A stretch of DNA of 64,000 nt from Klebsormidium nitens (Eukaryota > Plantae > Klebsormidiophyceae). The notes under the pieces were generated by a model. The model was not told the origin of the DNA. It ran no database searches and was given only the letters and a program-made list of their open reading frames with translations. Position numbers and translations under genes: made by a program. The stretch covers positions 124,001 to 188,000 of the forward strand of contig DF237061.1 in the NCBI GenBank assembly GCA_000708835.1, written 5' to 3'. Positions within the stretch are counted from its first letter, which is position 1. The number at the start of each line of letters is the position of its first letter. Positions 2,540-12,597 of the stretch are shown here, piece after piece.

Positions 2540-5500
2540 CTATATTACAAAGGTTGCATCGTCGGAATCGGGTCTAGCAGCTTTTGCATGCAACTGGTGT
2601 TGCCTAGCCTCTCTGTCGACTACCTCAACAGCAAGTCGGGCTAACCGTTCGACCTTCGTCTCTTGAGAATCAGCAGAAGGGGCTGCACGGCCTTTTCCCA
2701 GAAAGGGCTTTCTCTTTGACAAACTTTTTACCTGTGAGAAGGCCCTCACAAGATCAAACCTCTTCTTTCTACGCCTGAAGGCAGCCCTGAGAGCGGCAAG
2801 ATTCTCAGCCAGCCTTGGATGCCGCGAAAGCACTACAAGGGCAGACTTTTCAAACGCCACCCACAGGGATGAAATCAAGATAATATGGAGTAGAACGAGG
2901 TAGAGTCCGCTGAAATCGTCTAGGGACAACGCCCCAGCTTCATCCTCCTGCAGCCAATAAAGAAGCTGCACCTTTATGGAAGTGCCAACATTTGTGGACC
3001 TTCATCAGAGACTTGGGACAAACTATTGAGATCGACTGTGCCTTGCTTTGCTCACAAGTGGAGGCACGATGGTCACATTGATTGGGTTGTTATGCAAACG
3101 TGTCGGCTGCTACAATGAAGGACGTCAATAAAGGTTGGAGCTTGAACTCAGAAGCGATGAACAACGTGCAAGGGCATGACATGAGACTCGCACATGTCCT
3201 GGACTACATGACTTGAAGACGCACCTGCCCCAATATGGATGCGCATTGACTGCTATTGTAGATCCACTTGTTGTTCAACGTGTCTAAATAGCCGTTCGCT
3301 TTGAGACGTTCCATCGCTGTATTTATTGGTTTCGTGTACGAAGAATTTTTCTGCACCAAATCACGAATCTTTGTAAGATAAATCTTGCAAACGTTGGCAG
3401 AAGAAGCATACTAGACTAGCAAGGGTATCCTGTGATTTAGACACGCTACTTTCTTGTTTCTAGATTAGCCAAAAACAACGGGTGGAATTTGAAGTGGTCA
3501 AGTCCAATCACCACCTAAAGATACGTGAAGACATAAGGCCTGAGTTCGTCTGACTTACTTGCAAGCCCATGACAAGCACGGCAGGCCCGAACGGGGTACC
3601 AACAACTTCCAAATCACAAGGCTTTAATCCTGCGAAGTAGATAAGTGATGGCAACTCTGTGATGTATGCGATAACGCGTCCTGAGCGAACGGCCTCCACA
3701 CCGCCTATCGTTGCGTTTGCCGTCTGTAGACGAAGACAGGGAAAAAATGAAAAGAAAGGCAGCATCTGATTGATAGGTTGGAAGGCTGTTGTCAGACGCG
3801 GCAGACACTTGTAGAGCAGGTCACGAGTGAGTTGAGCAGTTGAGCAGGCCGGCTCGTTGGAAAGGTAACACAAGCAACAGACTGCCAATTGGGCGTCATG
3901 TAAGACACGGTCATCATAAGCGAAATCATTGGTGCTAGCTGTTTCATGAAAAGACTTTCAGCCTGAAGGACTCCGTACATGTCTAACCGAGTCAAGCTGA
4001 GGTCACTCGAAGAGGGCCTTAGTACCTCAACTTCTTTATGGGAGCCTTAGCAACATTTAAGAGGTTCGAGGGGCCAGAGAAATGAACGAACCATAGTGTT
4101 TACCTTTAGTTGAGGCTGAAGAGTGAGGATCTGTGCGTCAGTGCTTTGTGTCATGTATGTGTAGTAGCCTCCCCCGGAATTCACTGCGAAACTCTCATTA
4201 CTCCTGAGGATATCTTGCAAACTAGTAACGGTTGGGATGAGCTGATTGGCTGTCAGCACAGAGGTGAAGTTTGCCTGCAAGCAAAGGACACGGAGGCAGT
4301 ATTGAACATGTCATCAATCTCCACCAGTTGTGTTCCATCGTCTTAGAGAATTAGCAGGCCACAGCAATAAATCAGAAGTGCAAAACGGTGGTGAGGGGGA
4401 GGATTCCCGTTTTAAAAGATAAGCTGTAGAAATAGATGATGACAAGCTCACGAGAGCCTTTACGACCTCACCGTGTATGCAGAGATCAAGATGATCATGA
4501 AGAAGTAGAACCCAGCACTTGAGATGCGGATGGACCAAGATCGGCTTCGGGGCATGGGGGCGTTCTGATTGAGGGTCTGCAAGAAGCAAGCAAGCGGAAT
4601 CTCGTGAGGCCAAATGAATACATATGAACTCTCGGCCTATTGGCTTGTACAGTAGTGTACACTGCCTACGGAGTTGCCAAGAGACAAGGAATCCTATAAA
4701 AAGGAGGTGTTTGGAAGACTTGGAGCCTCCGAAGATGCTGTTCTGGTGCAAGTTTCAGCCTCCTAAGGCCCTATTTGGTGTCCCCACAGTCTTCCAGAAG
4801 AACATGCTTTCTATGCTTTTACACCATCAGCTACTCAACTGACTGGAGCCCTCAAAACTTATCTTTGCATTTCCAGACTCATTGCCACTCAATGCTTCTA
4901 ATCTGCGCGGAGAACTCAAAATGCGCCTCTGCTCACTCACCATAAGAACGTCCACTAGGTATGACTTGGAGGCTGCATACAAAAGCAGGAGTATCAAGGA
5001 TCTGCCAACCTTTGTCAGGTTGCGTAACAAAGTGCTAGAGGTGTTCAGTTTCTGAATTGCAACAGGCGACATCAAGAGTTAGGCCCTTGTCCGAGCGGCG
5101 TTGGTAGGCCATCACTCAAGGTCTGCATGCAACCAAGTCTGCAAGCTAGATCTAGTTGAAGCTGTACGACCACGGCAACTCAGTTGGTACAGTTGCTCAA
5201 GGTGAAGATACTCACTATCCTGTAGCACATAGCGCTGTTCCTCCGCTTGCGTCCTCATGTTCCGGATCCGCACAACTTTGTAGTTCCCAAGAGGGGACAT
5301 CCAGCTCAAGATATTTAACACCAAAGCAAAGCCAATCACTGTGCAACCCGCAAGAACCCACAAGGAAGGTGCGAAGGGCTTGGTAAAGACTGAGGCAGCG
5401 TCTGATGCAATCTGCACAAGTAAAATTATCAATTCCTCAGCTGGGAGTGCTGAAAGGAGGGGGAAGGGGCAGCAAGGGGCAGGCCCCCTACAGCGGCAAA

Positions 5501-6534
5501 GCAAAGGATAAGGAGAATCGCCCCAAGCAAGCTAGGTCAGATTGGATGGCTTGACAGACGCAGGCAGCTTACTCAGCAAGTCAAATGCAGCGCGTCCCAT
5601 CAACCAACAATATGCTGGTTACCTTCTTTCCAACACCTCATGATGAGTGCTAAGACTTGCAGTGCGCTTGTTACTGCAGAGCTTTCAAGGAGAGTCCGTA
5701 CCGGCCTCTTGATCAGGATGGCAAGCCCTCGCCCATCGAAGGGGAAAGTAAAGTCCATGAAAGGAAGCCTTTCCCAACTCTGACTGAAAGGGAAAGCAGC
5801 GATGTCTGCACGACCATAAATCATCTCCCCCGCTACACCTGGCAGGAGATACACAGGGAAAGATTGGTCAGAAAGTGGCAGTGCAAGAGCAGCGCAGTTC
5901 CTGAGGGTGCAAAAGAGGCAGCTCCATGTGGAAGCGCAGGCCTATTCAAAACCCTCTCTGTGATGATGGAGAGGAAGACTACTTCGGCGTGCACAGATCA
6001 ACACCCAAGAGCTCCATCCCTGAGTGCAGACTGAAGGATGACCACTAGAGGGTGGTTATGGATGCAACCTAAAGTAATAGGGTCCGCTTATAGCAACACA
6101 GCCATTGAGCGGGGTAGAGCATAACGCTGCCCCCCAAACAAGCTGACAGGTTAGATGATCCGCTCATCCCAAATGGTTCCAGCATCTGTTTAAAGGACCG
6201 TGTGATCAGTCAGGTCACACACCCAGCGGCCTTTCTCAATTCCCGTCTGGTTGCAGGGTCAGCCTCCAGCAGCAACAGCATGTGCATTCTGCCATGCTGC
6301 AACCGCACGCTGACACTCACCTGTCCAAGTCCCATTCTGGAGGACGCCTCCGGTGTTGCTTGGCGACTTGTGGAACTTCAATGTTGCATTAAGCCCAGCC
6401 AAAGCGAGCACAACAGGCAGGAGATCTACCAGCAGACCAGACCAGCCATAGGGAGAGGAGGAGTTGGAGTAGATGAATGGGGGCCGGTCCGCAGCTACAA
6501 CCCGCAAAATCGTCGCATTATAGGGCGCTGCCAT
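2540..6534 (-). CDS. GLR: Ionotropic glutamate receptor-like channel A (no ATD; S1-M1-pore-M3-S2-M4-tail), 517 aa, 9 coding exons
   Basis: Exons 6534-6321, 5838-5702, 5411-5216, 4972-4941, 4576-4472, 4274-4104, 3723-3559, 3350-3225 and 2947-2540 total 1554 nt in frame, all GT-AG. Motifs: NGTWTG-x-GEMIYGRADIA, RLPFMDFTFPF, FTKPFAPSLW (M1), AYTANFTSVLT (M3 gate), AYITE and PCDL (S2), LSLDDFSGLY (M4). Confidence 0.9.
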
Positions 6535-11200: not shown

Positions 11201-12597
11201 GCCAACGGCGAATGATCAAGGACTTTTGCCCTGTGGAATCTTGCTTGTAAGTTTTGAATGTTGAGCTGACCTTTCAGACATGTATATGCTCCTCGCAATG
11301 AATTTTCAGCCCAGTGAAACTCTGTGCGGAATCCTTTTGAATCTGCACGTTGGTATATATCTTGCAGACACCTCAAAACCTCTCTGTGAATCTAGACTTC
11401 TTCAGCTTCGTGCCTTGGAGCATCGCCTGTACTTGGTCTCGTTTTCCCGGTCCCGTGATGAACACCGTTTGCAATTAAATAAACGCCGTGGTATGATCTT
11501 GCTCTGCTTCCTCGTGCAGACTGTCCGAAGCATCAGGGACGGCGTCGCAGCTGTCCAATCGGGCGAGGCCTCTGCATACATCGCAGAGAGTCACGTTTTG
11601 CAGCACATTGCCGGACAGCTGCCGTGCAACTTGCAAGTGGTGGGGGCCTTATTTGGTCCCAACGGCTTAGCCCTAGGCGTTCGCCGCGGCTGGCCCTATA
11701 CACAGGCGCTCAATGTTGCCATGCTTCAACTCATGCAAAACGGTGTTGGGGATGAGCTTCGAAGGAAGTGGGTCGGAAACCAAGACATCTGCACATCTAG
11801 CAGCCAGGTTCGTTTCTTTACCGTCATTGCCTACGGCCAGCTCAACAACTGCCCCGACTTCTTCTTTTTGCAATATCAGTGTTTCCTGATGCATCTATTT
11901 CCTGTGCCCTACAGTCTGATCAAGATCAGTCAATTGGCCCGCATACACTTACCGTGCATAAGGCGAGAGCAGGACAGCCTTGTTGTCTCGCCTGCAAACG
12001 AAGGGCACAGGAATGTCCGCAGCCCATCGTTGACATTCAAATATCTTCTTTGATTGCCCATCCGTCGAGTAGATCCACCCCAAATCCACCTTTCGCAAAG
12101 AGCCCGGCCTAAGGCTTGTTGTTGTTGGTAGCTTAACCACCAGGCGTGGAAACGGTCTGATGCATTTCTTTCCGTCTTTTCTTCAGGTATCTAACCGAGC
12201 CCTCCAGTCAACAGACTTTTCTGGCCTCTGGTACACTCTTTTTTGTGCTATTGCTATTGGGGTCGTGATCATAATCTGGGAGAACCTGATGGTCAACGTC
12301 CTCCAAAGCTTTCCGGCTCTCCGGTCGTCCTTCCTATCGGGCACAAACTCTTTGAAGTACCACGAGAGCGTAGGCGACTTGTTTTCCGCGGGTGATGAAG
12401 ATCGTGCTGACTTTACAAATAACCCTGCTTATGAAGTCCCAGCAGGCAGCGCTAGTGACAGGATCGCTAAGCTGTCCTCACCGACCACCTCGCATGAAGC
12501 AGGAACCCTCAAAGACGAAAGTGTGGATCGGATCTTAGACCAGGGCGAGTATGAGTCTGCCGATGCTTGTATGACGGATCTAGCTGCAATGCTTTGA
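8289..12597 (+). CDS. GLR: Ionotropic glutamate receptor-like channel B (no ATD), 517 aa, 8 coding exons
   Basis: Exons 8289-8493, 9208-9344, 9695-9893, 10180-10211, 10492-10599, 10877-11050, 11520-11807 and 12187-12597 total 1554 nt in frame. Motifs: NGTWNG-x-GELLAGRADIA, FLAPFTTSLW (M1), AYTASFASFLT (M3), AYIAE and PCNL (S2), TDFSGLW (M4). Intron positions and phases match GLR-A. Confidence 0.9.

Follow-up and report, generated by a model that had tools for sequence, protein, structure and literature searches.

Gene models and transcripts of the locus

We analysed a 64,000-nucleotide stretch of the Klebsormidium nitens scaffold DF237061.1 (the window; unmarked coordinates are window positions), which holds two divergently oriented ionotropic glutamate receptor (iGluR) genes, here called A (minus strand) and B (plus strand), whose products lack the amino-terminal domain (ATD). 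The spliced model of gene A, an A-type ATD-less subunit of 517 aa, runs on the minus strand with its ATG at 6534, its stop at 2540 and 9 exons (6534-6321, 5838-5702, 5411-5216, 4972-4941, 4576-4472, 4274-4104, 3723-3559, 3350-3225, and 2947-2540). The spliced model of gene B, a B-type ATD-less subunit of 517 aa, runs on the plus strand with an ATG at 8289, a stop at 12597 and 8 exons (8289-8493, 9208-9344, 9695-9893, 10180-10211, 10492-10599, 10877-11050, 11520-11807, and 12187-12597). The genes lie head to head with 1754 bp between their ATGs. The rebuilt models thus bore out the original prediction of two divergent paralogues of 517 aa each, both starting at S1, the first of the two halves that form the ligand-binding domain (LBD), with ATGs about 1.75 kb apart.

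All introns of A and B are GT-AG without exception, and the two proteins align with 34% identity over 496 residues (E 2e-91). The intron positions had been described as shared. Seven are indeed common to both genes in position and phase, and they include those around a 32-nt microexon in the pore helix, but a further intron of phase 0, at residue 340, is present in gene A alone. In gene A the microexon (4941-4972, minus strand) encodes the start of the pore (M2) helix, and both flanking joints were present in RNA contigs. The gene B microexon (10180-10211, plus strand) has the same position and phase; its joint 9893/10180 was seen, and the contig continues into exon 5 at 10212. A 111-nt version of exon 4 was rejected, since it breaks the reading frame, whereas the 32-nt microexon fits and is confirmed by the RNA joints.

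Both genes are already annotated in GenBank as glutamate receptor, with models that are imperfect. Residues 30-517 of gene B are matched at 100% identity by GAQ82471.1 ('glutamate receptor [Klebsormidium nitens]', 488 aa); this model starts at Met30 and is therefore without the first S1 strand (window 8289-8375). The GenBank model of gene A (529 aa) uses the same ATG and has a different 3' end, with an extra 3' splice to window 1832. For the 517-aa product of A, the unspliced C-terminus finds support in its likeness to the paralogue GAQ88650.1.

To follow the transcripts we mapped four public assemblies that behave like RNA (covering approximately the exon share of the stretch) on window 4400-10390; the contigs assembled from these four runs are of low depth. 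The contigs confirmed introns A1, A3, and A4 of gene A (joints 5838/6321, 4972/5216, and 4576/4941) and introns B1, B2, and B3 of gene B (joints 8493/9208, 9344/9695, and 9893/10180), and contigs of both genes were present in the same runs. A gene A contig carrying the exon 1/exon 2 splice extends unspliced upstream to 6744, and overlapping contigs (6318-6744, 6677-6857, and 6767-6963) extend the transcript to 6963. Gene B contigs in two runs begin at 8073 (covering 8073-8492), pass unspliced across the ATG and go on into exon 2. The 5' leader of gene A (6535-6963, minus strand) is at least 429 nt long and that of gene B (8073-8288, plus strand) at least 216 nt; both are unspliced, and each has 4 upstream ATGs, with upstream open reading frames (uORFs) of 2-36 codons. 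Such long uORF-bearing leaders suggest translational control of both receptor genes. In-frame stops lie upstream of both starts, a TGA at 6633-6631, 32 codons 5' of the gene A ATG, and a TAG at 8280-8282, 2 codons 5' of the gene B ATG.

No contig was found in 6964-8072, and none of the four runs gave any depth in the bins of 7000-7999. The resulting untranscribed spacer of at most 1109 bp (6964-8072, no strand), GC-rich at ~7400-7870, is a candidate bidirectional promoter region. In repeat and tandem-repeat scans the spacer and its flanks showed only a 21-nt two-copy repeat, and Rfam gave no match. No joint entering exon 1 of A or B occurred in the RNA contigs. The unspliced contigs across the ATGs, the upstream in-frame stops and the silent spacer together show that no ATD or signal-peptide exon feeds A or B in these libraries, which agrees with the earlier claim that two intron-bearing ATD-coding regions could not fit in the spacer. 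In a relative of 97-98% identity, a contig begins 31 nt 5' of the ATG and covers gene B; this copy differs by few substitutions and one in-frame 3-nt insertion.

The pair is flanked, in the public DF237061.1 annotation, by an aldehyde dehydrogenase gene (Aldedh; window 1-991, plus strand), which runs off the window start, and by an MFS transporter gene (window 13918-19663, minus strand). The low-GC region at 54-56 kb (2-kb bin GC 0.30) was considered as a compositional island and rejected, because GC is 0.000 across ~54800-55400, most simply a run of N at an assembly gap.

Protein layout, ligand pocket, and membrane orientation

A and B share the layout S1-M1-pore loop-M3-S2-M4-tail, and both have 3-7 residues ahead of the first S1 strand. 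Exon-wise Pfam matches were Lig_chan-Glu_bd, Lig_chan, and SBP_bac_3. Against PDB sequences, the S2 exon matched the ligand-binding cores of GluA2 and GluN1 at ~1e-8, and a profile of 10 family members matched the LBD and transmembrane domain (TMD) of GluA2 from S1 through M4 (E 1e-76, profile positions 8-425). The AlphaFold model of B has a mean predicted local distance difference test score (pLDDT) of 80.7, and its best Foldseek matches were AMPA-receptor LBD-TMD chains (E 1e-22, ~400 columns). The SYTANLAAF-type M3 gate motif reads SAYTANFTSVLT in A and AAYTASFASFLT in B, and its Y-T-A columns are invariant or nearly so in the aligned iGluRs.

M4 lies at residues 396-414 of gene A (2852-2908, minus strand; hydropathy 2.21 over 19 aa, with an acidic N-flank and a basic C-flank) and at residues 399-417 of gene B (12238-12294, plus strand; hydropathy 2.38). 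An AlphaFold helix at model residues 360-393 (gene B 389-422; pLDDT at least 85) spans M4 of B. The GYG motif is absent from both protein sequences. Hydropathy, alignment and RNA contigs thus upheld the predicted combination of an M4 with neither ATD nor TVGYG filter. Both proteins have the bipartite S1/S2 clamshell interrupted by a channel that marks membership of the iGluRs, and the M4 after S2 that marks the eukaryote type; the ~380-aa ANF_receptor ATD and the cleavable signal peptide of that type were not found. By fold and domain order, A and B are genuine minimal iGluRs.

The two proteins differ in the ligand pocket and in the pore. By alignment columns, R95 of gene A (codon 5768-5770, minus strand) is the equivalent of GluA2 R485, which binds the ligand alpha-carboxylate, whereas gene B has P92 (codon 9276-9278, plus strand) at this conserved position. 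The column holds Arg in 9 of the 10 family members, with B the only one to differ, and in at least 90% of 33 iGluRs. The neighbouring residue, Thr or Ser elsewhere, is Ala in B. The 'AY..E' motif of S2 has its acidic residue in both A and B. In the pore loop, MQQG of GluA2 corresponds to LNQN in A and to TSSN plus a one-residue insertion in B; by inspection of the model sequence, the Gln of A is aligned with the GluA2 Q/R site. No other K. nitens paralogue has a branch as long as that of B (0.92-1.05). Because B is without the Arg that the other family members keep, a classical amino-acid-gated homomer of B appears doubtful.

No hydrophobic signal region was found at the N-termini of A and B, which are part of the S1 fold from their first residues on. 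The lack of a signal peptide before a domain that is expected to be extracytoplasmic is the most unusual solid fact about these proteins. Lys and Arg residues are concentrated after M1, before M3, and after M4, and the stretch preceding M4 of A is strongly acidic. Of the nine N-x-S/T sequons of A, eight lie in S1/S2. Two S2 cysteines, the pair that makes the conserved disulfide of solved receptors, are invariant in 33 of 33 aligned iGluRs. Given these flank charges, sequons and cysteines, the binding domain most likely lies outside the cell or in the lumen, in the canonical orientation. Insertion would then depend on M1, which as a reverse signal anchor would bring the ~130-residue S1 across the membrane, and S1 would stay unable to fold until S2 arrives. 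The first S1 helix of gene A (residues 34-52, exon 1, ~6435-6379) is itself very hydrophobic (Kyte-Doolittle 2.04 over 19 aa) and could score as a transmembrane segment or signal anchor in topology predictors; the equivalent in B is below threshold.

Relatives and an older A-type/B-type unit

The relatives come from searching exhaustively with a profile of the S2 exons. Word-index protein searches, with GAQ88650 and with the family alignment as queries, gave back nothing but the query itself and one plant glutamate receptor-like protein (GLR). The main tree held 41 sequences, with land plants represented by five GLR3.7 proteins (clade 3 only), and was read without a root or with metagenomic ATD-less sequences as the root; no relatives turned up when prokaryote genomes were scanned by pattern, so the trees are without a GluR0-type outgroup. 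The K. nitens paralogues formed a clade (support 99) within a green-algal clade (100) that includes proteins of Coccomyxa, Monoraphidium, Gonium, Edaphochlamys, and Volvox. In the proteins of this green-algal clade, a few residues precede the first S1 strand. Its sister group (92) consists of ATD-less metagenomic proteins with signal-like N-termini.

The five land-plant GLR3.7 proteins formed a distant, separate long branch of 2.0 substitutions per site, and no land-plant GLR occurred among the named proteins of the 150 best S2 matches. A and B grouped with the green-algal and metagenomic ATD-less sequences, neither with the GLR3.7 proteins nor inside the animal clades, and so apart from the protostome ionotropic receptors (IRs), which descend from metazoan AKDF receptors. 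As predicted, then, they are not nested in the land-plant GLRs, as far as these are sampled by GLR3.7. The further proposal of a distinct minimal iGluR class goes too far. A and B are unlike land-plant GLRs and GluR0; however, they belong to a wider green-algal clade and were already in GenBank as genes, and ATD-less iGluR clusters of ~450-520 aa occur also in arthropods, chordates, and diatoms, which makes the layout a recurring variant and not a unique class. The exhaustive search also returned five proteins of 1250-2150 aa (P0007, P0017, P0018, P0020, and P0036) with 2-5 separate S2-like stretches each; from this arrangement they may be fused or concatenated modules of the iGluR or substrate-binding protein type.

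A second iGluR pair lies on K. nitens scaffold DF237397.1, where the A-like paralogue GAQ88650.1 has an iGluR neighbour upstream on the same strand, with ~3.4 kb between them. In a careful tree, A grouped with GAQ88650.1 (92/93) and B with the neighbour of GAQ88650.1 (99/97). The approximately unbiased (AU) test rejected A and B as sisters (p = 0.0006) and the DF237397.1 pair as sisters (p = 0.003), and marginally rejected a position of B outside the clade of A, GAQ88650 and the neighbour (p = 0.044). It follows from these groupings and rejections that neither pair is a recent local duplicate; A/B as a recent inverted duplicate is rejected on the tree and the AU test. On this phylogeny an A-type/B-type pair is older than a block duplication, and both types are retained in both copies. 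The second B-type gene (DF237397.1, fetched-locus positions 614-6640) is annotated as 378 aa with its start inside the M1 exon, and its S2 is interrupted by an intron at about residue 324, where A, B, and GAQ88650.1 have none.

In Volvox africanus, BSDZ01000011.1 (fetched-locus positions 10001-26029) carries two family members of 821 aa and 739 aa, in same-strand tandem ~3.5 kb apart. Both have a long low-complexity C-terminal tail that is lacking in the Klebsormidium genes. The tandem pairs of DF237397.1 and of Volvox, together with the solitary K. nitens paralogue GAQ85569, argue against a required shared promoter. At the A/B locus the head-to-head layout and the spacer of at most 1.1 kb probably give a bidirectional promoter, but this promoter is a local feature and not a conserved requirement.

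Subunit partnership, rival explanations, and known receptors

The best overall explanation, to which we give a probability of about 0.6, is that A and B are minimal green-algal iGluRs, A bearing the ligand-binding Arg and B altered, with a probable local bidirectional promoter between them. A is predicted to bind an amino acid canonically. B, with its altered pocket and different pore loop, would probably partner an A-type subunit in a modulatory or 'tuning' role and not be a classical amino-acid-gated homomer. Co-regulated genes whose products form an A/B heteromer are a tentative extension, which we regard as possible but clearly below even odds; indirect support comes from the loss of Arg in B, from the duplication of the A/B unit, from the shortness of the spacer without transcription and from the occurrence of both genes in the same RNA libraries. 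By analogy with insect IRs, an Arg-retaining A and an Arg-less B could even make up an obligate heteromer from an ancient two-gene unit, an independent invention of the co-receptor/tuning arrangement with S1 inserted without a signal peptide; this fuller version we hold to be rather unlikely.

Several observations weigh against the favoured explanation. The second B-type gene was read without its S1 exons, so that B is the sole case in which Arg loss was seen in the B type. Neighbouring genes are copied by a block duplication even when they do not interact, the head-to-head orientation of the A/B pair is not that of the tandem DF237397.1 pair, and the third K. nitens paralogue, GAQ85569.1, stands alone. 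The clades put to the AU test were named only after the tree had been seen. The co-occurrence of A and B in RNA assemblies from bulk culture does not amount to co-regulation. Moving ~130 residues across a membrane without a signal peptide is unusual, and the Monoraphidium family member does have a signal-peptide-like N-terminus.

The strongest rival, which we rate as a serious contender at somewhat under even odds, is that A and B are independent homomeric channels and that their adjacency is a relic of local and then block duplication, with accidental orientation and no functional coupling. The same-strand family duplicates in Volvox africanus and on DF237397.1 fit this explanation, as does the solitary third paralogue, and both proteins have a complete LBD, pore, M3 motif, and M4. 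However, it leaves aside that B is without the Arg of nearly all aligned receptors, and that an A-type and a B-type gene were retained together at two loci despite ~50% protein divergence.

It is improbable that gene B is a decaying or non-channel pseudo-receptor without a role in ligand binding or gating. The long branch of B, the lost Arg, the change of Thr/Ser to Ala and a pore loop unlike that of A would suit such a fate, but the frame is intact over 8 exons with canonical splice sites, and the gene is transcribed and correctly spliced in three studies. The copy in the relative differs by an in-frame indel and few substitutions; the disulfide cysteines, M3 motif, and M4 are retained, and the AlphaFold model is confident.

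We consider slightly less probable still a cytosolic LBD, or a protein of an organelle membrane, in which an inverted channel would sense an intracellular ligand. Neither A nor B has a cleavable signal, and some plant GLRs have been reported in chloroplast and mitochondrial membranes. Against this, the charges at M1, M3, and M4 are distributed as the positive-inside rule requires in the canonical orientation, an oxidising, glycosylating compartment is suggested by the S2 cysteine pair, which is invariant, and by the S1/S2 sequons of A, and the N-terminus is an S1 fold and not a transit peptide.

Very improbable, finally, is that the models are incomplete and the minimal layout an annotation artefact that hides upstream signal-peptide or ATD exons: gene finders often miss signal-peptide exons, Monoraphidium P0068 begins with a hydrophobic signal-like stretch and the RNA contigs are of low depth, but exon 1/exon 2-spliced contigs stay unspliced for 429 nt (A) and 216 nt (B) 5' of the ATGs, with no joint into exon 1, zero depth between the leaders and in-frame stops upstream, the related-strain contig ends 31 nt before the B ATG, and 9 homologues were independently annotated with the same start point.

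The closest known counterparts of A and B are the green-algal GLR genes of Volvox, Gonium, Edaphochlamys, Coccomyxa, and Monoraphidium and the K. nitens paralogues GAQ88650.1 and GAQ85569.1, which share their clade, layout and S1 start at 30-50% identity. These relatives keep the Arg and the disulfide cysteines, and B alone is without the Arg. Volvocales members differ from A and B by 225-350 extra C-terminal residues, and Monoraphidium by its signal-like N-terminus. No experimental characterisation of the green-algal ATD-less relatives was found in the searchable papers, nor any accessible paper on an ATD-less or signal-less layout in algal GLRs.

Among characterised receptors, the metazoan AMPA/kainate type (GluA2 LBD-TMD) was the best match in both sequence and fold, with the SYTANLAAF-like M3 motif and the S2 disulfide pair in common. 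Identity to GluA2 is, however, ~22-27%; A and B have neither ATD nor signal peptide and form a separate clade, and their pore helix, partly encoded by the 32-nt microexon, is divergent. Land-plant GLRs share with A and B the superfamily, the green lineage, the presence of M4 and the absence of a K+ filter, but they carry the ANF_receptor ATD (Pfam PF01094), which A and B do not.

Most protostome IRs are ATD-less with an M4 and work as heteromers, in which tuning subunits are without the glutamate-contacting Arg and their partners keep it. A with its Arg and B without it would match the partner and tuning subunit of such a pair, heteromery of A and B being a proposal. IRs branched off from the AKDF receptors within metazoans and possess signal peptides, and the co-receptors IR8a and IR25a carry an ATD; in the tree, A and B are related to IRs only at the superfamily level. 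Cyanobacterial GluR0, which has a signal peptide, resembles A and B in its lack of an ATD, its minimal ligand-gated pore and its bipartite binding domain. It differs in having no M4 and a TXVGYG K+ filter (PMC3483616, PMC12455266), whereas A and B have M4 and no GYG.

The compact 517-aa layout, eukaryotic and with an M4 but no ATD, would make these proteins a convenient minimal system for studies of iGluR structure and gating, and the lack of a signal peptide raises a concrete question of membrane insertion. The A/B pair is also an opening to ask if subunits became specialised outside animals. Klebsormidium, a streptophyte alga that branched early, belongs to the lineage leading to land plants. 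The glutamate-receptor genes that we found in K. nitens are of the short chlorophyte type and not land-plant-like, which bears on the timing of the ATD-bearing plant GLRs.

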